Shown here piece by piece: positions 18,101 through 35,706 of a DNA stretch of 64,000 nucleotides (position 1 is its first letter; each line of letters begins with the position of its first letter). The notes under the pieces are model-generated. The model did not search any database. It was given only the letters and a program-made list of their open reading frames with translations, and was not told where the DNA came from. The position numbers were made by a program, and so were the translations under genes. The DNA is from Haliotis rufescens (taxonomy: Eukaryota). The stretch spans positions 3,410,001 through 3,474,000 of the forward strand of contig NW_025964057.1 in NCBI RefSeq assembly GCF_023055435.1, given 5' to 3'.

Positions 18101-20202
18101 ACGATAACAACCACGCTCCTACCTTGCCTGAATCATGAAACTCAAGGTAACACCAACGCGCCCCTACCTTGCCTGGAACATGAAACTCACGATAACACCT
18201 ACGCTCCTACCTTGCCTGAAACATGAAACTCAAGGTAACACCAACGCGCCCCTACCTTGCCTGGAACATGAAACTCACGATAACACCTACGCTCCTACCT
18301 TGTCTGGAACATGAAGCTCAAGGTAACACCTACGCTCCTACCTTGCCTGGAACATGAAACTCAAGGTAACACCAACGCCCCTACCTTGCCTGAAACATGA
18401 AACTCAAGGTAACACCCACACCCCTACCTTGCCTGGAACATGAAACTCACGATAACGCCCACGCCCCTACCTTGCCTGAAACACGAAACTCAAGGTAACA
18501 CCCACGCCCCTACCTTGCCTGGAACATGAAACTCAAGGTAACACCCATGCCCCTATCTTGCCTGAAACACGAAACTCACGATAACATCGACGCCCCTACC
18601 TTGCCTGAAACACGAATCTTACAATAACACCCACGCCCCCATCTTGAGCTACGTTGTGTCAGGTGTAACCCTACTCAGAGGCAAATGTGGGAAAAATGCA
18701 ACTCATCTGGCGAGGACCCCAGCCGGGGGATGTGCTACACATATGGGTGAGTGAGTGAGTGAGTGAGTGCGTATGTCGCAAAACAGTACATAACAAACTC
18801 TCTACAGCGAACTAACGATAGCCATCTGATATCTGATCCCCAACAAGCCCAAATACCACTCATGTTTCTGAGCGAAAAGGTTTTTCTGAACAATGTTTAT
18901 GCATCGAACTGATTTCTCCGGTCCCTTGTAGTTCATTATATCCATGTTCTACTGTAAAAACAATACTGGGATTTCCATGCAGTCCATCAAGTCCATGATA
19001 AAGTAATCTAGTGCATTCTCCGAAATACTGTTGTGACATGAAACCTCTTTCAGCTTCGGGAATTATTGTTGGCAGTATGGTTTTATGCAGCTTTTAGTCA
19101 TATCACAGCGGGGGACACCAGAAACGGGCTTCACACATTGTAGCCATATTGGGAATCGAACCCAGTCTTTGGTGTGATGAACAAATGCTTTAACCACAAG
19201 GCTACCCCACCACCCCACTACACATCGTGGTCCAGCCTACCTGCCTCTGTGCACAGGGTCCGTGTAGCATCAATGTTGATCTTCTGTGTGGCCTCGGGTT
19301 GACTCTCAACAACGTCTGGACGTCGTTCCGCTGCAGCATGGATTACACAAGATGGCTGGAAGATACAATTACAGGACATACCAGATGTACCAGCTACAAG
19401 GAAATAATGTCTGTCCACAGAGAAGCGTGTTGTGTCAAGCAAAAGGCTAAGCACATTAACCCATGAAGTGCAGATAATTTGTAATTCACAATGTCAAGAT
19501 TACAAACGATGAGGTTTCAACAGGTTTGTGTAAAACAGCTATGTCACTATTCTGACGCTTGGTGCAATGTGACCGGTCATTTCACATGGGGAAAAAGACA
19601 GAATACATTGAATGAAGCTATCACATTGATGGAACTTGAAGTACTAGTTTTTCGTTCATTCGTTTGTTTGTTGTTTAACGCCGCACTCAGGAATATTCCA
19701 GCTATATGACGGCAGTCTGTAAAGAATCAAGCCTGGACCAGACAATCCAGTGATTAACATGTGCATCGCTCCACGCAATTGGGATACGATGACATGCATC
19801 AACCAAGTCAGTGAGCCTGACCACCTGATCCCGTTAGTCGCCTCTTACGAGAAGCATCGTCGCCTTTTACGGCAAGCATGGGTTGCAGAAGACCTTTTCT
19901 AACACGTATCTTCACAGGTCACTGGTTTTTCAATCCATTGATGAATATACATTAAAAATTCATTATTACCAAGACGGTAATCAAACATCTAATTATCATG
20001 AACATGAAGCACATACCTTGAACTCTTGTATAACTTGCTGGATGGCACTGGGATTGGTTAAATCAACCTTTTTCAGTTTGTCGCCACTTCTGGAGAACGC
20101 CAGCCCCAGAACCTCCCATGACGGAGCAGCAGAAAACTCTTGAAACACAGCTCTCCCCAGCAGTCCTGACGCTCCCGTGATCAGCACTCGCTTCAACGCC
20201 AT
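11921..20202 (-). CDS. MAT2B: Methionine adenosyltransferase 2 subunit beta (RmlD-like extended SDR), 299 aa; join complement(20017..20202,19241..19355,14695..14847,13965..14158,11921..12172)
   Basis: Five exons with GT-AG sites and matching phases 0/1/1/0 total 900 nt. Protein has the Rossmann motif ITGASGLLG, HAAAERRPDVVE, STDYVFDG, the SDR YxxxK (YGQSK), LRVPILYG, RYPT, GTFHWS and TKYDMA, all typical of MAT2B. Confidence 0.95.
12556..12844 (-). mobile_element. SINE family A copy in MAT2B intron 4
   Basis: Reverse complement of the 4836-5111 element, with a (TGAG)n tail. Confidence 0.85.
13035..13660. repeat. About 37-bp minisatellite (TTGTTGTCAGGGTAACACACAGCCAAGTCACACA) in MAT2B intron 4
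   Basis: About 17 tandem units. Confidence 0.95.
13965..14158 (-). CDS. MAT2B: MAT2B coding exon 4 (GNGVLRVPILYG...KKLQ)
   Basis: Acceptor CTGCAG|, donor CAG|GTACAT, 194 nt, phase 1->0. Confidence 0.93.
14195..14356. repeat. 39-bp tandem repeat x4 in MAT2B intron 3
   Basis: Unit CACCAACATTGAGCTCTCACCAACAGTCCCACAGAAATA. Confidence 0.9.
14695..14847 (-). CDS. MAT2B: MAT2B coding exon 3 (GKVGAWVLFVSTDYVFDG...YGQSKYEGE...)
   Basis: Acceptor TTCCAG|, donor AAG|GTTTGT, 153 nt, phase 1->1. Not in the ORF track; translated by hand. Confidence 0.93.
14828..18645. repeat. 43-bp minisatellite (about 88 units) overlapping the MAT2B intron 2/exon 3 junction
   Basis: Unit CCCACGCCCCTACCTTGCCTGGAACATGAAACTCAAGGTAACA; the first unit includes the start of exon 3. 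Confidence 0.97.
19241..19355 (-). CDS. MAT2B: MAT2B coding exon 2 (PSCVIHAAAERRPDVVE...CTEA)
   Basis: Acceptor TTCCAG|, donor CAG|GTAGGC, 115 nt, phase 0->1. Confidence 0.93.
19651..19921 (-). mobile_element. SINE family B copy in MAT2B intron 1
   Basis: Reverse-complement match. Confidence 0.85.
20017..20202 (-). CDS. MAT2B: MAT2B coding exon 1 (MALKRVLITGASGLLG...QEFK)
   Basis: ATG at 20202, donor AAG|GTATGT, 186 nt, phase 0. An acceptor TGTAG| lies 10 nt upstream of the ATG (exon start 20212), implying a further 5' UTR exon. Confidence 0.93.
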
Positions 20203-21485: not shown

Positions 21486-22969
21486 AATCAACCAACCAAG
21501 GCAGAGAGTATGCACGATCACTCCAAGGTCCCAAGCACTCCGTATTCGTCATTAGAGCGGAGTAATGTGGATTAGTTTGCTACCATGTCCGACCTGTGCA
21601 TTGTGCATCATCATGTAGAGATGACGGGGATTGCTGCTCATGATATCAATCTTAGTTTGCCTGGATGATTTGATTACTTGCATGACAAAGCTGGAATAAT
21701 ACCGATTGTGGCAGTCCCTCATGCAGACCCTGGAACATATATATCCAATACCACCCATACAAGGCCATAACAGTTGGCAAGTCTAGATTACTGCAGTTTT
21801 AGGCTGAAAGTGAAGAGAGTCTCTCAGCTAATTTTATTTATATTATATTAAAATTATATTGAAAATATTAAAAATGTTTCTATTTTTTCTGTAAAATATT
21901 TTCATAACAGAGACAAGAAGTCAGTCAATTATTACAGTATAAAACAACAATCGCTACCATCATGGAACTGAGCTGGACAGATAAGAAAATTAATGTTCCC
22001 TACCATACATATCTGTAAAACATGGATCAGATGTTTTAAAGCCATAGACAGCCTGTACATAATAGAGCATGCACCACATAAACATGAGATGTGGACTATT
22101 TGTTACAAAAATGTTCAAATGCCTTTAATACGTAAAATTTACTTTTATCTGCAAATAACTTATTTACTTAATCCCATCTGCCTACAATCACCTCTCATCA
22201 AGTGAATCCCCTACTTCACAGACAGCCTAATCACATCAGTCATGGTTGACTAGATTACAAATCCACCAGTTGATACCTTTCCAATGCAGTAGAATAACGC
22301 AAACAGGGTGGGGACTATACACAAGTATTATAATTATAACAAAATAAATTGCTATATTTCCATGACATATTGTTCCATCCTCAAACTGGACATTTTCATC
22401 CTGGTATTGACAACATTATCAAAGTAGCCGCCACGTTTATTTTGAAGTATTGACACCGTAATGTGCCATGAAACATGTCGTTCAGCAGGTAAAGGTGTAA
22501 TGTCAAGTCCGTACTGGTCGGCCTATTGGTCCATATCCTTGTATTTTACAAGGAGAATCTAGCTGAAGACACATAAGTAATGTATTATTTACAAACTGAT
22601 ATGCTTTCAGTATAGATCTAATTTGAAAAACATTTCATGATCATGATATTTCACCAGTGTTGACAGCTATCTAATTACAATTTCACATCGGTTGAATTGA
22701 AATAAGCGGTAGATCACACCAGTAACTAAAGTGACGCCAGTTACCTTTATTAAGTGCAGGCGTGATTGATGCGGTTTTATTGTCACAAGCTTTTGCACCG
22801 ATTTACTTATATCAGGCAGACTTACAATAGTTACACGTTGTTTACCATTGACTGAAACACCAATCAGGAAAGACAACTCTCCGGTGTGTCCGTATTCAGA
22901 AGTTCCTTGCATCGTTAACTACAGTGACAAGAATGTTAGTGACGCCTAAATGTCGATGTAAAGAGTTTA

Positions 22970-23090
22970 CTTGCGCTCGTTTCGCTGTCATTCGGCACAT
23001 CTCGGGCAGCCCCGCTGAACGTCCTTTTCTCATATATAGCTTCGAGAAAACTGAGATCTAACAAAGTAATTCAGATCGTGTATTTCTAAA
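22970..23090. promoter_or_regulatory. Probable bidirectional promoter between MAT2B (-) and the Scm3/HJURP-like gene (+)
   Basis: Local CpG-rich patch. A minus-strand donor CAA|GTAAAC at 22971/22970 could end a MAT2B 5' UTR exon. The plus-strand ATG lies in an AAAATGGCGG (YY1-like) context 120 nt away. Confidence 0.5.
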
Positions 23091-23192
23091 ATGGCGGGCT
23101 GTTTCAATCCAAACAGTATGGAGGAATTTATGGTGTCAGCTGATGCAAGTTTGAAACGATTCGAAACGAATTTTGACATGATATGTTCAAAG
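23091..23192 (+). CDS. Scm3/HJURP-like exon 1 (MAGCFNPNSMEEFMVSADASLKRFETNFDMICSK)
   Basis: AAAATGGCG start context, donor AAG|GTACAT, 102 nt, phase 0. Confidence 0.85.
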
Positions 23193-26100
23193 GTACATGC
23201 CTGTTTGTACATATTTACCTATTTCATTACATGTAGGATACTGTTTATTATGAACTGTTTCATAATTATTGTCAAAATTCCAGGCTTTTAATTCTGATTG
23301 CACATCTTTACCTCGGCTGTTTGTTATTTGATGACAATCATACGCCGCAGACTGTGAAATAATTACATCACGGTCAGTAATGAGCAGTTTTTTCTCATGA
23401 TAAGATGCATGCCTGCTTAATGATAAGTAATATTGCACTATTTTCCTGTAATTTAGTTGCTTTTATTCTTTACAGAGCTTGATTTGCAGGCATCACATCC
23501 ATCAATTCAATACACAAAAGCCCTGTCTCATCATTATTGTTACATGGCAGTTCTTAATGTACTAATAACTGCCTGGGATTGGCGGTGATGAGTGTTATAC
23601 CACCAGGGACTACACATCTGTTAATCAATTAATCTGTTAATTAAGTCATTGCCATTCCCATGTTCTATTCTGAACAAGAGTTATGGTATTTCAGGGAATT
23701 ATTCATCTGGTCCAGACACAACACTAGATTTCTAGACATACAGAAGTTTCAATGACACACTCAGCTTAGTGGGCATTTTTATATTGAAAACTACTCGCTT
23801 GTATTATTACGATTTGCCACAGGCTTTGATATGCACCAACGCCTTGTATATGAACTGAATATCTCAAAGGTATTTTCCGGCAAATCAAGTTGACAGTTCT
23901 TGACATCAGGATCCAGATAAACCAATCATATCATTACAATATCATGCTAGTGAATCAGGTCACAGGGTGGTGCACACAAAGTTCAAAAGAGGATCAATTT
24001 ATTAAATGAGAGAAGTATTAATGCTGGAAATAACTTAAGAGATAAATGTAGGACACTTTCCATTTTTGCACTTTTCAAGTTTATTACATTTACAGAGAAA
24101 ACATGTCAAAATATTGCAGCCAGGTTGAAAAGACAAAATGGGTTACCTCCCTTGCCTCATGATGCCAAAGTGTACAGTGATTTGAGTGTGATAATAACAT
24201 ACCTTGTAATTTGAAGGGTGGTGACCATAGTGATGCTGGAATGTGTTCAGGTGAAAGGTTTTTTGAAGCTGGAAACTTTGTTCTAGGGCGTTTCCACACC
24301 AAGATCTAAAGAAAGAGAAATGTATAGTGTGAGATAGGATAAGTATATAAGTATACAATTTAATGTAAAATTTTCAATTATATCTTTATTACATACACAA
24401 GCCATCATGAGATAATAACAACACAACAAATCTGTAATCATGGCTTCTAGTCTTTGAATGCTAGCATAAGATGAAACACCTCAGCTGTTCCCCATGTTGA
24501 CATGTGTGTCTGACATGTGTGTCTGACGTGTGTGTCTGACATGTGTGTCTGACGTGGGTGTCTGACATGTGGGTCTGACATGTGGGTCTGACATGGGTCA
24601 TGTGTGGGTCTGACATGTGGGTCTGAAACGTGGGTCTGACGTGTGGGTCTGACATGTGTGTCTGACACCTGGGTCTGACATGTGGGTCTGACGTGTGGGT
24701 CTGACACGTGGTTCTGACATGTATCTTGTTTCTTTCTCTTTCAGTATGGACAGGCTTTCCCAGATGATGACATAGTTTCCATGAAGACTGGTGAGATTGT
24801 GAATGACAAAGGTATGTATCTCCCCATTGTGCAAACATAACTATAACACTTGTTGACATAATTCTCCATTATATAACAGATGCATCTGTTTGTGGGCCTG
24901 CCCCAAATAACCCAGTGATCTCAAAAACGAGTTGATAATTTTTTTATTAAGATGCATGTAAACAGACTGATGTAATACTAATGTTCATCCAATCTCATTA
25001 AAATCAGATCTTTTACTCCACATGACATGTGGGCTTTTGAGCCAATCAGATGTCAGCTTTCTAAAATGAATCGGCTTAATTTCTTTACCACCATGATTCG
25101 GAAATTTTGATTTTAACGAAAGAAAATTAAAAGTGAAAACAAATATTCCTTTGATGTTACTTCCGAGATTCCTTGGAGCTCAGAAACAACAGCCTGTATA
25201 AAACGTCAACAAGAATATAATTGATCTGCAGTTATTAGTTACGTTCGGATTTACCAATTAACTTCGTTTTTCAAGACACAGAAATGAGATATGCTGGTCT
25301 TAATGTTTTGCTTATACATACCTCAATGCTGATTGGTTAATTAGAAAATTCACCTGATGTGTCAATGCAAAGTGATACTGTGTCGAAATACTATATCTCA
25401 TGTAAATTGGGTTTCATATTCAGCACAATCAGCTTTTTGTTAGAAATTTGTAGGCTGCTTAAGATGAACAAGTTCTGTAAAGTTCTAGCTTTGTAAACTA
25501 AATATGCTAATATTATGCATATTATATAAAATTACAAAAAATTGTCAATGTTGGTGTTTCAAAGTGAAAGGGCTTTTTATGTTCTTCATATTTATGAATG
25601 ATTAGCTTGACTAGGTCAGGGGAACTCGTTATTTAACCTGATATTTGTTTTTTGTGTTGCAGGAACTATCCGGAAACTTAAGCCTGTGTCTTTTGGAGGA
25701 GCTAAGCTGGCAGTGACCAAGCGTCGAGGTACTGGCCAGAGTTTCCTGAAGGGATTTGTGGGGGGCTTCACTGACTTTGTGCTTGCTGTGGCTCATTGTA
25801 GTGAAACAATTCAACCATCTTCTCTCAGGCGGCATTCAGTGACCTCCCTCACATGTTGGGTCTTCTTTATTAACCTCTCCAATAAGCCAGTGCACATTTT
25901 TTCAGATAGAAGTTGTCTTGTGCTATTTGAAGTTCTTAATAATTCCCTCAGTTTAGGCTTAAAAAAATAGTCTTGGTTCTCACACACTGCCTGCATCATA
26001 AAGTCTGCCGTACGTGTCGTTTTTAATTCCATTTTAAAAATAAATAAATATATATATACTTAATAAATACTTAATGACAATGCGATCCAATATAGTACGC

Positions 26101-29100
26101 AGTTACTTCCCTTTACATGCCCACTGCTTTACTGGTGTCCCGTGTTATGGTCATGGCTGCAACAGGAGTTTGTATGCTTGTTTATGTAGGGAGGCTCTTA
26201 ACATATTAGTTTAAACAAGCAAACAAACAGAAAAAATACTGCCCGACTGCCCGCACTCTATGGTCAAAAGTTGTTGCCTGAGAACAAATACTTTTATTTT
26301 CTCAAGCCTTAAGGACATGTATGTTTCACTTTCAGCTGACAAGTTCACCAAGGCTCTGTCCCACAGCACCATCGACTTGTCACAGAGCCAGCCGGTCGAC
26401 GCCCAGTCTGTGAGTCCACTGTGTAACCTTGGGGTTTCACCCAGGTGCCACTACTGCATGTGGAGGGTATTACGTGGCAATTCCCAAATTCAAACAATAT
26501 GTTAACCCAGAAAACTGTACGTAAAAGAATTTATTGGGAAACCAACAAGCAACTAACAAATGGTATACAATCAACAATTGTGTTACAAAATCCGCTAGAT
26601 TTACAAATCAGTACAAATTACTGCACACCAATTACAATGGCAGTTAGCTTCTAACGAATCCCAACAGAATTAATGTACTACAGTTACAATCACCGTGTAA
26701 CAATAAAATACACTGGAAAAATACCAACAGGCCACAAAGTTGCGACTAAATTGGTCGCCATGGCGATCTAGTTTTGTATTTTGCGACTGGTATTTTCATG
26801 TCAGTCGCCAACTGGCTCCTTGTCTTTAATTAAGTTTGGCGACTAAATATCTCTTGTCATAAGATATTAAAAAAGATCGTTTTTAATATAAGTGCGTAAC
26901 TTCGGTGAAAAAATTCGATATCAGAACATAATAACATCGACAAGATCACTGTTGGCCATGTGTTCTGTTTTCGCTTTCGATATGAAGCTCCATACCTGGA
27001 ATGAAGGAAGCACTTTCCGTTATTAAGTAATGCACTAACGATGTTAAGAGTTTAGTACCCACGCATGCGCTGTACGACATCCGCCCAGGTGACAGCTAAG
27101 GCGGTCGTTTCGCCGTTCAAAAACACGAAGTATTTTTCTATATTTGCGCAACGGCAAATGATGAATACCGTATTTTCTTTAGTATAGTGCGCACCCCTCT
27201 CTAGCAGATTCAGTATTTATTTTTTTTGGGGGGGGGGGGGGGGGGGGAAACAGGGGTGGAAATTTGCCATTTCCCGACTCTCGGGGAAAGTAGAAATACG
27301 AGGTTGGGCAACAAAATCACTTACTTTAACTTGTCCGGAGGCAAGTAATATTGGAAATTACTATCACTGTCTACATTTCTAACTACTTGTAAGGCAGGCA
27401 GCCAATCAAATTTCAGCGGTGATACCAAGCTCGTGTTTGATAAATTTCAGAAGTTGGCGAAAGATTTTTGTTAAATCATGTTATTCTGAACTAAAAGGCA
27501 GGAAATCACGATATATATATATTAAAAATATGGAACTTCGTGAATCTATCGTGCTAGGTTACGAGCTGTGACAGATTTTTCATGCATATATTTTTGCATT
27601 AAACATCGTGTCCGAGCCGAGAATTTAAGGCGACGAAAGCTGAGATGTCATTTGACTTACATTACATGCGATCGCACGAAAAGATGGAAATAATAACTTA
27701 GATGTAAGTTTGATTACTTTTAGATATATTTTTGTTGAATTTATTTATTACTTTGTATAATATATCAAAGATTTGCTTAAAACGTCTTTATTTTGCTCTT
27801 TGACATGTTCGATGTGGACCCGTTGTTGAAATGTGTGTCCGAGAATTATATTTTCAATAACATCGCGGGAAATAGTGAATAATTTTTTTATTTATTGATA
27901 AAAAAATGATAAATTGATATGGAATACGTATTTCAGACATTGTGAAATGTGATAGATTTAATAAATGAATGATATTATAGGTAGGTCCATACAAATATAA
28001 ACTATTTTGACGTGACTACGGCTTGGCCGGAAAACCGGCCTACGGTGTTGAAAGGGATAAACACATAGATAAAAAATCACCAGACATGTTGATTTACCGT
28101 TTAAATTGTATTTTTTTGTTCTGCTAGGCATTGTTTTATATCCAGGGATTAAGATTACCATGTGTATCTTCTCGTAAACTAAGCCGGACACAGCAATCAG
28201 CTGTACACACAATTTCTTGGAATTTACCGGTGATTCAGTCAAGTCACACCCAATGATATAACTTTACAGGGTTTTAATGCAAGGATCGGCAAAAAATGTA
28301 TCTGAAACTTCTTCTTTTTATCAGGAATAATATATTCCAATATCTTGTTAATTTAGATGCAGCTTTTACCAAACATATTTGAAATAATAATAACCCTAAG
28401 CGTAAGCGAAGCAGCTGATTGCTATATATTACCGGGTATTACATGGTTTTACATGGAACACACAGTCTGACCAGTCACCGTCAAGGCTCCCGTGCACGTG
28501 ATCGCGTGAATTACGTGTTGACATAGAATCGTCCAACAAAATCAAATATGACCTTTAACGAGTCAAAGTATGGCATTTATGACAAATGTATCCATTCTCT
28601 GTCAACGAAAGTTCGTTTCAAGGCATCAATAGCGGTAATCTGACCGTGGTTTCTCTTAATAACCGTTTGTTAGATCTTCCGATCGCTTCACACACGATTT
28701 CGCCGAAATAAATTAAAACAATATTAAAAGTAATTTTGAATAAAATTAATGAAATAAGTTACTAACATAAGTCCAGATATACAAAGAACACTTTTTATAG
28801 TCAGACAGTGTAATTACATGATTTGTTTGCGTACTTCAGTATGGATTTGTTGACATGGTATTTCCGGTGTTACGTTCTCATGGTAATGTCTTTCCATGGG
28901 GGAAAAACATCAAAACTCATTATTTCGTGTATAATGCGCACCCCCTTCTACACAGCTGTGTTTTTTTGGAAATAAATGCGCAGTATACTCAAGATAATAC
29001 GGAATGCTTTGAATGGCGAAGCTGACACGGAAGTTTCGTCGTCTATCGACACGTTCGATGAACCAAAACCTGCAACTGGCACCGGTAAACTGTCAGATGA

Positions 29101-32100
29101 TGTTACTGACACAATGTTCTAAAGCTTGTTTGTCTGAAAAACTCAAAAGCTTCAACAACACGTCAACAGTTGTTGTTCATGATTTAAAACTGATTATTCA
29201 AACTAATGGATTTTTTTTTTTTGTTATGCAGTTAAATTACAAGTCATTACTTTTGGCTCCTTACATTTTGTCTTGGCTCTTTGAAATTCTATTTGGCTCC
29301 TTGAAAAAATAATTTAGGAGCCAAGTGGCTCCTTTGAATTTTTTGTAACTTTGTGGCCTGACCAAGGGACACACAGGGGCTACAGTAGTTTAATCTATGA
29401 AATATTTCGCTTTCGAACCATGACTGTATCTTGTTTTTCAACCTCGATTTTGAAAACTGATTTTTTTAAATAATCTTTTCTTTCTTAAATTGATGTGTGG
29501 AGAGGCCATTGTCAAAGAGGCATTGTTGTTGCAATTTACTTTGAAAGATACCATTTAATTGAAATTTGTTACAAATGATAAACCACTAATTCCTGATATG
29601 ATGCAGTCTATGACTGACAATTTAAATCATTCTTCATCACATATCCCGTAGTGTGAGAATCTTGTATTCTCTTCTTTGAAATGTCCAGCACTGGCAGAAC
29701 AGTGAGTGTCGTTTTCTTATCCTGAAGCTTTTTGGAGTGAAGTCCTATTGTGGCTAGTAATGCATTGTTTACCATGTACTAACGTTGAAAATGATTGTTT
29801 CAGATTTACAGCAGCTACGTGTCACCCCGGGTCAATGTGACCCATTTTGCAGGTAAGTCTCCATTTTCACAGATGTCGCGTAGCTTACTTCCTGTAGTCA
29901 TGGTGTAGGCAGGCTGTGTCTTTAAACATTTATCTGAAGCAAAGTTAAATATGATTCTTTTCGGAAAGTAGACTTTAGCCGTTATGTTGTTTAGTTTGTA
30001 CATACATGTAGTAACATTGTCAAGGAAGTACATGTGTTGGTTGGTAATGTCGACACAAAATGTTCATGTCCAGGAGTGCTGGTGTTTGTTAGCTTGTCTG
30101 TTGATGTAACATTGCTGATGGGGATGATATCCATCTAACAAGGAAGGTGTGGCAGATACACAAACACAGCATTTACATGATCAAGTGTCAGTAACCAGAT
30201 CCATCTTACAAGGAAGATGTGGCAGATACACAAACACAGCATTTACATGATCAACAGTCAGTAACCAGATCTTCAATCATACAGCATTCACCCATCTTCC
30301 CGAGGCAAGAGAGTTAACTGACTATAAAAGTCTAGTTTCCACCCTTGCCGAACTTTTAAAGTCAGTTAACTCTCTTGTCCCGGGAAGATGGCATTCACCC
30401 TGCTGGGTTTCCAGAGAGCAGGTGCCCAGTTTCCAAAACCTGACAGAAACTAGGTTACTATAACCCAGATGGCTTTGTGTCACCACACCCTGATGGTGTT
30501 CTATTGGCACTGATTTACCTTGCCCAGATAGATACTTTTGAATGTTTACACGCCAACGTGACCTTGCTGGAATATTGCTTACTGGGGAACTATAAACTAA
30601 CACTCACTCACTCATTTCACCTTAACATTTGGAACAAGGGGGTATCTTATTGGTTCAAGCCTTTACCCTCTGGAATAGTGCTGAAAACTTTTGTAAAACA
30701 ACTCACTCACTCATTATCTTGACCTTTCAGATGATGCAAGCAAACTGCTCTCTTTCATTTGTGAGGATGAGAATGAGCCGAGTGATGCGGAAACCATCAG
30801 TTCTGGAGACACTTCCAGCGTAGACAATGAGGCGGAAGACCGCTCCACTGACCCAGAGTCATACTCAGATGAGGTAGATGGTGACCTTGACCTCTGTACG
30901 CCCAAACCTAGATACCCTTGCAAACCAAAGCAGGATGTGTTACGTTTCAATGATAATGTTTGGTATTCTCTTGGAAGTGCCAGCAATCAGTCTCCAAGTT
31001 CTGGATCAGATTTGTCAGTTAGGAAAAACTTTGGATCTAGAAATTCTCGTTCACAAGAAGTATCAAGTAAAACTGAGGACAGTTTTAGCACAGAAGGAGA
31101 TCAGAAAGGTGCATGCGGAAACTTGTCGAAGAGTATTCTTGCACGATTCCACATGATGAAGGGTCAACCGGAGGACAGTGGGTTCGAGAGCGGTCCAGGG
31201 ATAAGAATGGGTACTGACGAAACAAGAGACAAGGCGCCTCTACGACTGTTTTGTCTGAATGAAGATAAGATAAACCGAGTGATGAGCTGGGTCAAAGATC
31301 AAGCAAATGAGAGTCGTCATCTTGGAGCTCGGACCCAGCCAGTGCGTTTGAAAGATGGGTTTGAATCCAACCTGCCAACCCAAGCAGATGACGTTCATCT
31401 TAAGTCACCGACAAAAATTAGAAAGAAAAGTGAGAAAGATCACAACTTTAACAATCAGTCATCTCTGCAGAATCCACCTCCATATCCTCTGACTAGACTA
31501 ATAGGTGATATGAACCAGACGTATACGGTTCCTCTGCCTAATGGGAACAACCCATACAGGATGCCATTCATGGATGTCAACCGGGGCACTTGTAAACAGC
31601 CTGACCCACCTCCTTGCAACCAACACAAGACCTGGTCGGCTGATGCTGGTCCGGTAGCTTCATCAAAGTCCACTAATGTTGGCAGAATATATGACTCATC
31701 TGAGCTGTTGGAAACCTCTCAAGAGCTCAAGACAGATGCCATGTGCCAAAGAAGGATTGTCCGAGCAAGAAAACGAACGTTCATTCCAATACAACCTTCT
31801 TACACCTCTGAGCAGCTTTTGGACTATTTGACCTCACCAATGCCACAAACAATTGTTGAGATATTGTCTCCAGCACGACCAAGTAGTTTGGAAGTTGAGG
31901 AGGAGACACTGCCATGTCTGAAGTCTCCGCCTCCATCTCTGCTTCCCCCGAGGACTGATGACAGTTTGTATGGATGGGAGCATTCACAGATTCAGCACAG
32001 TCCCTCTCATCACCGTCACACACTCATGAATCGGTTTAGCAAACAAGAAAATAACATTGGAAGAGCTGTTGATATCAACGGACACTACCCTATGAACAAT

Positions 32101-34395
32101 TTGAACAAAAATGATGCCACAGAAAGCAGTGGATCTTATGATGATGATGATGATGTTGTGATCACCAAGGTTAAGATAGAACCTGGACATGAAGCTGTCA
32201 CCTCCCATACACAGCCTTGGGAACATGCAGAACCAAGAGAACATCCTCAGCCTTGGGAACATGCAGAGCCAAGAGAAAATCCACAGCCTTGGGAACATGC
32301 AGAGCCAAGAGAACACCCACATCCTTGGGAACATGCACAGCCAAGAGGACATGCACTGGCAAGAGAACATGCACAGCCAAGAGGACATGCACAGCAAAAA
32401 GAACATGTCCCCTGTGAGATGAGGAACAAGTATTGGCTGGAGGACAGAGTGTCAGTGAAGGATGATGCAGTGACACTGTGTGAAGGATTTGGATACTCTA
32501 TCCCTGAATATGGCCACATTATGACTCCTGTACCTCAAGCCATCATTTCTCACAATGTTGGCAGGAACATAGGAACGCCAGTAACCATTGAACACAGCAA
32601 CAACAGAATCATGAGAACTCCTAATGGAACACTAAACTCTCTTGTAACCTATGGTGATGACCAAAACCTGGGAACACCCAAGTCCTTCATCTCTCAAGAT
32701 ACCAACAGAAGCCCTGGAAGAACACCTGATGCACTGCCAATAACCATCACCCATGGTGACAACAGAAATCCTGGAAGAACACCTGATGCACTGCCAATAA
32801 CCGTCACCCATATTGACAACAGAAATCCTGAAGGAACACCTGATGCACTGCCAATAACCGTCACCCATTGTGATAACAGAACCCTGAATGGAACACCCCA
32901 AACCTGCTTCTCTGCAGGATCTAGAAACAAGAAGCAGATCTTTGATCACTTGAAGCAAACAGGATCACAGTCTGATTCGAAGGTGATCACTGAGAAAGGG
33001 CTGAGTCGAGGGCGTGTGAAGGCAAGGAGGCAGCTTACAATGGAGCAGACAGGAAGGGGAGACCCCCAGCATCAGCTCCGCTCAGATGGGGGACAGGTGC
33101 TTGACAAGGAACAGCCTACTGCTAGACCCAGAAAATCACAAATGCAGCCCCGGGTGGTTGGGACAAATAGTGGGAGAAACAACACCAATAAGTTTTCTGT
33201 GGATGGAAAGAGTTATGAAACTCTTGCTAAGGTGTCATCTAAACACAGGCAGTCAGATGATGCTGGGGCCGATTTAACCTCAGCTGGTGAAGGGAGAGTA
33301 GGGAAGAATTACCAGGTAGGATGCTCTGCAGCCAGAGGTAGAAATGTAGCCTTACAGCTTAATGGAAGCGAACAGGAGACTGTGGGTAGGCATCGACATA
33401 GGTCTGATCGGATGGATGAAACACCAGCTTCACCTGGAAGGAAGGATGGGGCTGGCATGTGTAAAAATCCCAAAATAAGCTCCAGAAAATGTCAGCCAGA
33501 TAACCACGTGTTGTCTCCATTGCGAAATGGCAGGTGTTCAGCAGCTTCCAGTGTGGGTCTCTCCCCTTCATCACATCTGTCTCAGCTGCAGCTTAATAGC
33601 CCAACTCGGGCCAAGACTGAAAGGCCGAAGTCCGACAAGACATATAGCAAAGAACTGTTCAAAACTCCCAAGGGATCTCCCAGACCAAAATGTGCAAAAC
33701 ACCCTTCCCAGATCACCAATGACCTATCCTCAAAAACACCATATCAGTGCAAAGACTTCTCTCAGAACATTTTCAGTTTGAAAAATAAAACCTCCACTGA
33801 CAAATCTAACCACATGAGTCATAAGTCTTCTTCCTACAATGATGTATGCATATCTTCCAGAAATCATGTTTCATCTCGGTCTCCTTCTAAATCAGACTCA
33901 GACAATTTCAGACGATCCATGCCACAACTACCAACTTCCCCTCGTTTGCATCCCTCAGACAAACAGAAAACCTCATCAAACGAGTACCTGGTATCCAAGG
34001 AAAATTTCAACAAATCTCCTCATTCGAAAAATATATCTTCTAAAGCGTCGAAAAAGCCAGTTTTTCTTGTTCCAGACAGTTCCCACATCAGGTCACTGAA
34101 ATCTGTCAAATCATCCAAATCGATAACCTCTGAACTTAATTCACGCGCAGTTAACACAGGACTTAAGAAGATATCCCGGGACCAGTTCCGATCTGTGTAC
34201 AGGACAGCAGACAAGAACCCTCTGTGGACAAGCACCCCATCAAAAGCCAGGAGCATGCCTGTCCTCAACCAGACCATGTCCACGATTCTGCTTGGTGAGG
34301 ATGATGATGGTGCCTCGGATGAGGACAACGATGATGATGAGGTTGAGACAGTCAGTCCCTACTCCTTCAGGTCCGAAAGTGTCATTGGAATGTAG
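23091..34395 (+). CDS. Scm3/HJURP-like CENP-A chaperone candidate, 1340 aa; join(23091..23192,24745..24811,25663..25728,26336..26409,29804..29852,30731..34395)
   Basis: Six exons with GT-AG sites and phases 0/1/1/0/1 give 4023 nt in frame with the 1152-aa ORF. The spliced N-terminus ASLKRFETNFDMICSK|YGQAFPDDDIVSMKTGEIVNDK|GTIRKL matches the Scm3/HJURP CENP-A-binding pattern (helix..KY..F..D.I/V...TGEIV.D.G). The remainder is S/T/P/K-rich and low in complexity. Confidence 0.85.
24497..24722. repeat. 13-bp minisatellite (CTGACATGTGGGT) abutting the exon 2 acceptor
   Basis: About 17 units ending 22 nt before the AG at 24743-24744. Confidence 0.92.
24745..24811 (+). CDS. Scm3/HJURP-like exon 2 (YGQAFPDDDIVSMKTGEIVNDK-G)
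   Basis: Long pyrimidine tract ending TTTCAG|, donor AAG|GTATGT, 67 nt. Confidence 0.88.
25663..25728 (+). CDS. Scm3/HJURP-like exon 3 (GTIRKLKPVSFGGAKLAVTKRR)
   Basis: Acceptor TTGCAG|, donor GAG|GTACTG, 66 nt, phase 1->1. Confidence 0.8.
26336..26409 (+). CDS. Scm3/HJURP-like exon 4 (ADKFTKALSHSTIDLSQSQPVDAQS)
   Basis: Acceptor TTTCAG|, donor TCT|GTGAGT, 74 nt, phase 1->0. Confidence 0.78.
26728..29360. mobile_element. 2.6-kb nonautonomous hAT-like DNA transposon with 5-bp TSD and nested elements
   Basis: Perfect 14-bp TIR CAGGCCACAAAGTT/AACTTTGTGGCCTG; ACCAA duplicated at 26723-26727 and 29361-29365; subterminal GCGACTAAA and TGGCTCCT repeats. Confidence 0.8.
29804..29852 (+). CDS. Scm3/HJURP-like exon 5 (IYSSYVSPRVNVTHFA)
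   Basis: TACTAAC branch point at 29777, acceptor TTTCAG|, perfect donor CAG|GTAAGT, 49 nt, phase 0->1. Confidence 0.8.
30293..30390. mobile_element. 98-bp hairpin MITE with 9-bp TSD
   Basis: About 38-bp TIRs CATCTTCCCGAGGCAAGAGAGTTAACTGAC.. / ..GTCAGTTAACTCTCTTGTCCCGGGAAGATG; GCATTCACC duplicated at 30284-30292 and 30391-30399. Confidence 0.75.
30731..34395 (+). CDS. Scm3/HJURP-like giant terminal exon (contains the 1152-aa ORF)
   Basis: Acceptor CTTTCAG| at 30730, phase 1, open to TAG at 34393-34395. Non-repetitive codon-like sequence over 3.66 kb. Confidence 0.88.
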
Positions 34396-34432
34396 ACTTC
34401 ACATAATGGACAGTTGGCACTACACGCTCTTT

Positions 34433-35706
34433 CTGGAGTGTAGACTACCCATGGTGGACACCCTCTGTCTGGAGTGTAGACTTCCCATGGCGGACACCCT
34501 CTGTCTGGAGTGAAGACTTCCTATGGTGGACACCCTCTGTCTGGAGTGTAGACTTCCCATGGTGAACAGCCTCTGTCTGGAGTGTAGACTTCCAATGGTG
34601 AACAGCCTCTGTCTGGAGTGTAGACTTCTTGTTGTGGACACCCTCTGTCTGGAGTGTAGACTTCCTATGGTGGACACCCTCTGTCTGGAGTGTAGACTTC
34701 CCATAGTGGACACCCTCTGTCTGGAGTGTAGACTTCCAATGGTGGACATCCTCTGTCTGGAGTGTAGACTTCCCATGGTGGACACCCTCTGTCTGGAGTG
34801 TAGACTTCCCATGGTGAACAGCCTCTGTCTGGAGTGTAGACTTCGCGTGGTGGACACCCTCTGTCTGGAGTGTAGACCTCCCATGATGGACACCCTCTGT
34901 CTGGAGCGTAGACTTCCAATGGTGGACACCCTCTGTCTGGAGTGTAGACTTCCCATGGTGGACACCCTCTGTCTGGAGTGTAGACTTCCCATGGCGGACA
35001 CCCCCTGTCTGGAGTGAAGACTTCCTATGGTGGACACCCTCTGTCTGGAGAGTAGACTTCCAATGGTGAACAGCCTCTGTCTGGAGTGTAGACTTCCTAT
35101 GGTGGACACCCTCTGTCTGGAGTGTAGACTTCCAATGGTGAACAGCCTCTGTCTAGAGTGTAGACTTCCCAAGGTGGACACCCTCCGTCTGGAGTGTAGA
35201 CTTCCCATGGTGGACACCCTCTGTCTGGAGTATAGACTTCCTATGGTGGACACCCTCTGTCTGGAGTGTAGGCTTCCCATGGTGGACACCCTCTGTCTGG
35301 AGTGTAGACTTCCCATGGCGGACACCCTCTGTCTGGAGTGTAGACTTCCCATGGCGGACACCCTCTGTCTGGAGTGTAGACCTGCCATGGAGGACACCCT
35401 CTGTCTGGAGTGTAGACTTCCCATGGTGGACACCCTCTGTCTGGAGCGTAGACTTCCCATGGTGAACAGCCTCTGTCTGGAGTGTAGACTTCCTATGGTG
35501 AACAGCCTCTGTCTGGAGAGTAGACTTCGCGTGGTGGACACCCTCCGTCTGGAGTGTAGACTTCCAATGGTGGACACCCTCTGTCTGGAGTGTAGACTTC
35601 CCATGGCGGACACCCTCTGTCTGGAGTGTAGACTTCGCATGGTGGACACCCTCTGTCTGGAGTGTAGACTTCCCATGGTGGACACCCTCTGTCTGGAGTG
35701 TAGACA
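34433..35706. repeat. 36-bp minisatellite (GGAGTGTAGACTTCCCATGGTGGACACCCTCTGTCT) in the 3' UTR
   Basis: About 35 units starting just after the stop codon at 34395. Confidence 0.97.

Follow-up and report, generated by a model that had tools for sequence, protein, structure and literature searches.

A gene of the abalone Haliotis rufescens that very probably encodes an Scm3/HJURP-type CENP-A chaperone

Orthologues of Scm3/HJURP were recently reported from most metazoan lineages, based on PSI-BLAST and HMM searches, HHpred and AlphaFold (Hollis et al., Sci Adv, 1 July 2026; PMC13322267). The species listed include the gastropod Biomphalaria glabrata, whose candidate HJURP (KAI8798300.1) was recovered with a HMMer E-value of 3.9e-15, as well as the annelid Capitella teleta, a flatworm and a priapulid (PMC13322267). 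The same authors argue that Drosophila CAL1 is a diverged Scm3/HJURP orthologue. In their description, the family evolves fast, has no homology beyond the domain and is marked by a KY motif, an acidic/hydrophobic strand and a DXGXL motif regarded as ancestral, and they report that HJURP and CENP-A have been kept or lost jointly across opisthokonts (PMC13322267). The initial annotation of the DNA described here still treated such orthologues as elusive in most invertebrates and CAL1 as the factor used by flies, a view now overtaken by the gastropod orthologue and by the assignment of CAL1 to the family (PMC13322267). Haliotis is unnamed in the main text and in the supplements searched, and the word 'intron' is absent from the main text (PMC13322267). 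Our literature search on HJURP intron positions, and on Scm3 in Lottia, returned nothing useful.

Here, we analysed a stretch of 64,000 nucleotides from Haliotis rufescens (contig NW_025964057.1, positions 3,410,001 to 3,474,000), referred to as the window. The genus agrees with the molluscan origin that had been thought probable from the letters alone. Our analysis indicates that three small exons of this window are, with high probability, the 5' part of the Haliotis Scm3/HJURP orthologue, a dedicated chaperone that would pass CENP-A/H4 dimers to centromeric chromatin. The gene model was reached through a 1152-aa downstream open frame, which led to two annotated Haliotis proteins that were then placed on the window by tblastn. 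The gene has six coding exons on the plus strand (23091-34395) and comprises 1340 uninterrupted codons followed by a stop. The exons add up to 4023 nt in frame, and every border is of the AG/GT type, as read from the sequence and checked by script. That the exons of 102, 67 and 66 nt splice in frame had already been proposed; when borders and frame were checked again, the translations matched letter for letter. A genome search with the orthologue found this as the sole matching locus in the 1.33-Gb assembly, i.e. a copy number of one. The coding exons and the domain are as follows:

23091-23192, plus strand: coding exon 1, 102 nt, residues 1-34; ATG at 23091, donor AAG/GT, phase 0
24745-24811, plus strand: coding exon 2, 67 nt; acceptor ttcag/TAT, donor AAAG/GT
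25663-25728, plus strand: coding exon 3, 66 nt; acceptor tgcag/G, donor CGAG/GT, ending in phase 1
26336-26409, plus strand: coding exon 4, 74 nt; placed by tblastn with the two Haliotis proteins, borders read, linked to exon 3 by contigs
29804-29852, plus strand: coding exon 5, 49 nt; placed by tblastn, borders read and checked by script
30731-34395, plus strand: coding exon 6, 3665 nt including the stop, 1220 aa; placed by tblastn, borders read and checked by script
23133-25682, plus strand: scm3 domain, residues ~15-63, spread over exons 1-3 (Pfam envelope of the orthologues, 15/16-63)

The first ~65 residues of the protein are the scm3 domain. Exon 1 carries the start codon and the alpha-helix of the domain up to the K of the KY motif. 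Exon 2 encodes residues Y35-K56 and the first base of G57, and thereby the Y of the KY motif, the acidic/hydrophobic strand and KTGEIVNDK, while exon 3 supplies the remainder of G57 and the end of the domain (GTIRKL...). Two introns thus interrupt the domain, one in phase 0 between K and Y and the other, 22 codons further on, in phase 1 within the Gly of DKG. Vertebrate HJURP may have introns at the same positions and in the same phases, a possibility that we regard as tentative and lean somewhat against. If true, it would provide gene-structure evidence for orthology across Bilateria.

The splicing of the gene was followed on contigs of four public runs (three organism labels from three studies; the RNA origin is a guess), which were aligned on positions 22600-26600 of the window. 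Intron-skipping contigs with the joints 24811/25663 and 25728/26336 are present in 4/4 runs, and the exon 1-2 joint 23192/24745 occurs in three contigs (records 2, X1; 12, X3; and 18, X5), the spliced contigs together covering the junctions of exons 1-4. The joints were reported as 24809>25661 and 25726>26334, with GT..AG ends and a 'cut +2' that corresponds to a two-letter register shift, and the raw read-out of the exon 1-2 joint (23190 into 24743) is shifted in the same manner. An intron-less copy of the gene is absent from the 1.33-Gb assembly, and spliced transcripts must therefore be the source of these contigs. The junctions 23192/24745 and 24811/25663, which the initial annotation had put forward from the letters, are hence supported by intron-less contigs. 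The annotated proteins of two other Haliotis species also continue across the same junctions.

Several further features of these contigs deserve mention. Two of the spliced contigs (records 2 and 18) start at 23085-23087, only 4-6 nt 5' of the ATG, which points either to a very short leader or to incomplete contigs; over 22600-26600, the contigs show no non-coding exon farther upstream. In one X2 contig of 2333 nt (record 8), exon 2 is joined to a piece of intron 1 (24264-24328) and not to exon 1. This piece sits in a repeat where contig depth is in the hundreds, and the joint represents either an alternative first exon or a contig chimera formed through the repeat. Very high contig depth (hundreds to thousands), together with many loose ends, was observed in 4/4 runs at 24208-24475, 24878-25145 and 25950-26217. 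These intronic stretches are probably dispersed, transcribed repeat families.

The introns and flanks of the gene contain other repeats as well. A 13-bp tandem repeat (TGACATGTGGGTC, 17.6 copies) occupies positions 24498-24722 of intron 1 and ends ~22 nt before the acceptor of exon 2. Beyond the gene, a 36-bp minisatellite (34422-35705; 35.7 copies with 91% matches) begins 27 nt past the stop codon and presumably lies in the 3' UTR; it gives rise to long spurious open frames on both strands, such as one of 439 aa on the minus strand. On the other side, a MAT2B-like gene has its first coding exon on the minus strand (19996-20202; Pfam Epimerase, E 4e-7; RmlD_sub_bind, E 4e-5). The two genes are arranged head to head, ~2.9 kb apart, and may therefore share a promoter region. 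A bacterial-type promoter scan upstream of the gene gave hits at chance level, from a model that does not apply to an animal gene.

Annotated orthologues of the abalone protein are available from Haliotis rubra (LOC124272724; P0001, 1234 aa) and from H. asinina (P0002, 1223 aa). Both are named 'uncharacterized', as had been anticipated for this gene. Among the first 78 residues, each orthologue differs from the window protein at six (compared by eye). Exons 1-3 are ~90% identical to H. rubra and H. asinina (exon 1, 91% to H. rubra), as compared with 74% and 69%, respectively, for exon 6. Such a contrast between N-terminal exons at ~90% and a tail at 69-74% agrees with what has been reported on the conservation of HJURP (PMC13322267). 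A search for homologues, seeded with residues 1-80 of the H. rubra protein, returned only these two Haliotis proteins; being based on word-sharing and a length window, it is uninformative on other molluscs.

The tail encoded by exon 6 is low in complexity and rich in Ser and Pro, with 69% disorder-promoting residues. It contains 29 SP/TP sites, including eight with the full CDK consensus. We detected no Pfam domain in exon 6 of the window, and an Atlas look-up with the conserved C-terminal block gave a score of 0.75, which is below noise. Two tandem repeats lie within this exon:

32206-32395, plus strand: 36-bp tandem repeat, 5.3 copies, in frame, PWEHAEPREH units
32703-32881, plus strand: 57-bp tandem repeat, 3.1 copies, in frame, TPDALPIT.TH units

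Both are insertions with respect to the H. rubra and H. asinina proteins, and it is mostly because of them that the window protein is longer than its relatives.

The assignment to the Scm3/HJURP family draws on profile scores. The two orthologues match the Pfam Scm3 model (PF10384) with 40.5 bits (H. rubra) and 41.9 bits (H. asinina) over profile positions 3-52 of 53, against a gathering score of 24.3, and the family is also precomputed for both of them in the protein database. With the exons of the window scored separately, exon 2 alone (22 aa) reaches 20.3 bits (E 4.5e-4; profile positions 23-44 of 53), i.e. 4 bits below the gathering score, and neither exon 1 nor exon 3 alone gives a Pfam match. 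The profile match that had been expected for this sequence is thus significant, both for the orthologues, which lie above the gathering score, and for exon 2 by its E-value. On these scores, the likeness to Scm3/HJURP is not one of chance.

The structural databank points in the same direction. Among 177,635 distinct PDB sequences, the H. rubra protein matches only 2L5A, the Cse4-Scm3-H4 construct of S. cerevisiae (E 0.23), and chain C of 3R45, human HJURP (E 1.6), both at its N-terminus. A profile in which the window exons were entered as separate rows retrieved the same two entries (2L5A, 0.053; 3R45_C, 2.2). Taken as pairwise sequence evidence, these E-values (0.05-2.2) are weak. Exons 1 and 2 searched singly gave no PDB match, because the pieces are too short. 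The motifs of the family can be recognized in the abalone sequence. The KY motif is formed by K34/Y35, with a predicted helix ahead of it where the family has one of ~25 residues, and is followed by the acidic, short hydrophobic strand GQAFPDDDIVSM. The DXGXL signature corresponds to D55-K-G-T-I59, with Ile for Leu, and aligns with EDNGHI of yeast. The vertebrate domains HJURP_mid and HJURP_C were not found, and the orthologues show no Pfam domain beyond Scm3 at E <= 1. The abalone gene fits all the traits by which the family has been described (PMC13322267).

Compared with human HJURP (3R45_C), the abalone protein has the same N-terminal helix ending in KY, followed by Q.F.D..V.M, in an ungapped alignment. 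Of the 13 identities over 39 positions that had been counted against the human protein, 12 could be verified on 3R45_C; the thirteenth, a Gly, falls beyond the printed alignment. Human HJURP acts as a CENP-A/H4 chaperone, the role proposed here for the abalone protein. In contrast, the HMD and HCTD (Pfam HJURP_mid and HJURP_C) are present in the human protein only, its TLTY stretch is replaced by KTGEIV in abalone, and the pairwise E-values remain at 1.6-2.2. The likeness to Scm3 of S. cerevisiae (2L5A) is closer: both proteins have SKY and D.V..KTG.IV.D.G.I..L, and yeast Scm3 is the better PDB match, in agreement with the earlier impression that the TGEIV.D.G part is fungal-like. The DXGXL motif, which lies within this yeast-abalone signature, is regarded as ancestral by Hollis et al. 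(PMC13322267). Unlike the abalone protein, yeast Scm3 is short and carries its domain away from the extreme N-terminus, and no similarity is seen elsewhere.

Among protostomes, KAI8798300.1 of Biomphalaria glabrata, a hit of an HMM search, likewise comes from a gastropod and carries its scm3 domain at the N-terminus, although it stems from another gastropod lineage and the comparison is made by description rather than alignment. Drosophila CAL1 is also a protostome chaperone of CENP-A (CID) with an N-terminal scm3-like motif (PMC13322267). However, remote-homology methods were needed to connect CAL1 with the family (PMC13322267), whereas the standard Pfam model recognizes the abalone domain directly. 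The abalone gene is an ordinary member of the family, as a routine Pfam scan flags its orthologues and the family had already been traced into gastropods.

A chaperone of this type calls for its histone partner, and a CENP-A (CenH3) gene is indeed present in the same genome (G000), on the plus strand of contig C594 (L035:3886-5080). Its hallmarks are LPFSR, the Trp of NWQA and a loop 1 that exceeds that of H3 by one residue. The gene was found by means of a 33-place degenerate pattern for HA.R[VI]T...KD in which the canonical Arg codon was excluded; this pattern matched three loci, two of them H3.3-like and the third the CENP-A gene. A genome search with PF00125 was of no use as a route to CENP-A, as it was swamped by tandem copies of canonical H3. 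The canonical histone genes form long tandem arrays with a unit of ~4.1 kb (contigs C110, C251, C261, C265, C278 and others), and at least 150 identical H3 copies were scored. The histone features are:

L035, 3886-4049, 4300-4374 and 4946-5077 plus stop, plus strand: the three exons of the CENP-A histone fold
L001, 1483-1893, plus strand: canonical H3, tandem array
L001, 720-1031, minus strand: canonical H4, tandem array

A representative search with the CENP-A exon returned only the CenH3 of other animals, through which the Haliotis proteins were then reached. The CENP-A protein of H. cracherodii (P0170) differs by eye from the exons of this genome at one residue, which makes H. cracherodii a close relative of the species studied here. 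The H. rubra orthologue (P0168) is called 'histone H3.3-like', and those of H. cracherodii and H. asinina (P0176) carry the name 'uncharacterized protein'. Over the whole alignment, abalone CENP-A shows 54% identity to canonical H3, and within the histone fold the two are closer.

The complex was predicted with three chains, residues 1-80 of the H. asinina scm3 protein as the partner, residues 45-148 of H. asinina CENP-A, and H4. For these H. asinina proteins, the complex scored 0.83, as compared with 0.02 for the best of three controls. In the calibration, the mark was reached by 51/78 solved complexes and by 2/108 mismatched pairs. The runs agreed in at least 73% of their contacts, with a pLDDT of at least 72 for the partner. 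The modelling of the domain with CENP-A/H4 hence passes its controls in H. asinina. In the model, the interface comprises scm3 residues 13-67, and the contacts extend over CENP-A 90-123 (loop 1 and alpha-2). CENP-A 104-123 (alpha-2) and H4 81-95 are contacted by a predicted helix (residues 13-35), whose contacts follow an i/i+3/i+4 spacing. Its interface residues 13, 16-17, 20-21, 23-24, 27-28 and 31-32 show helical periodicity. Residues 42-48 are predicted to form a continuous strand-like run against CENP-A 90-101 (loop 1). This geometry is that of the solved complexes (PMC13322267), so that memorised versions of those structures may lie behind the pass; as a modelling result, it shows likeness rather than binding.

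One can nevertheless propose how the protein may act. Residues ~13-35 would form an amphipathic helix that ends at K34-Y35, follows CENP-A alpha-2 and also contacts H4 in its C-terminal part. In the in silico prediction, the acidic/hydrophobic DDDIVSMK stretch pairs with loop 1 of CENP-A, which together with alpha-2 makes up the CENP-A targeting domain, and the turn KTGEIVNDKGTI is predicted to come after this stretch. By analogy with the family, the domain would cover this surface of CENP-A and could thereby hold the CENP-A/H4 dimer in solution and prevent it from tetramerising before it is deposited. The mostly low-complexity tail (1260 residues) probably serves cell-cycle control and recruitment to the centromere via Mis18 and/or CENP-C, again judging from other family members.

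Alternatively, the scm3 domain could be genuine but have drifted to another job, for instance in DNA repair or in the general handling of H3/H4, with another factor loading abalone CENP-A. The protein beyond its first ~65 residues has no likeness to known HJURP domains, and the resemblance of abalone CENP-A to H3 is unusually strong (54% identity to the canonical protein), both of which would be in line with such a role. However, a single genomic locus matches the orthologue, no other part of the gene is as well conserved as the scm3 domain, the contacts in the predicted complex map to the CENP-A targeting domain, and HJURP and CENP-A are kept or lost together across opisthokonts (PMC13322267). 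We consequently consider another job improbable. That the resemblance is fortuitous, or that the three exons do not form a genuine coding unit, could be argued from their tiny size and from the lack of a Pfam or PDB match for exons 1 and 3 alone, but this reading has practically no likelihood left, being already refuted by orthologue Pfam scores 16-18 bits over the gathering score and by spliced contigs in four runs, and opposed further by the same N-terminus in the annotated proteins of two species and by an intact frame of 1340 codons. The Scm3/HJURP assignment, and with it a probable function in CENP-A deposition, as first suggested by the initial annotation, is supported by the match to PF10384, by the PDB matches and by the predicted complex.

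The gene opens no new question, since the family was published in July 2026 for gastropods and most other Metazoa. Abalone genomes, in which these proteins are currently labelled 'uncharacterized' or 'histone H3.3-like', gain a named CENP-A loading factor and a named CENP-A. If the two introns within the domain are shared with vertebrate HJURP, the slowly evolving, yeast-like domain of abalone would be a useful bridge sequence for finding the remaining missing orthologues. The gene adds a well-conserved lophotrochozoan sequence to a family that is known for its rapid divergence.
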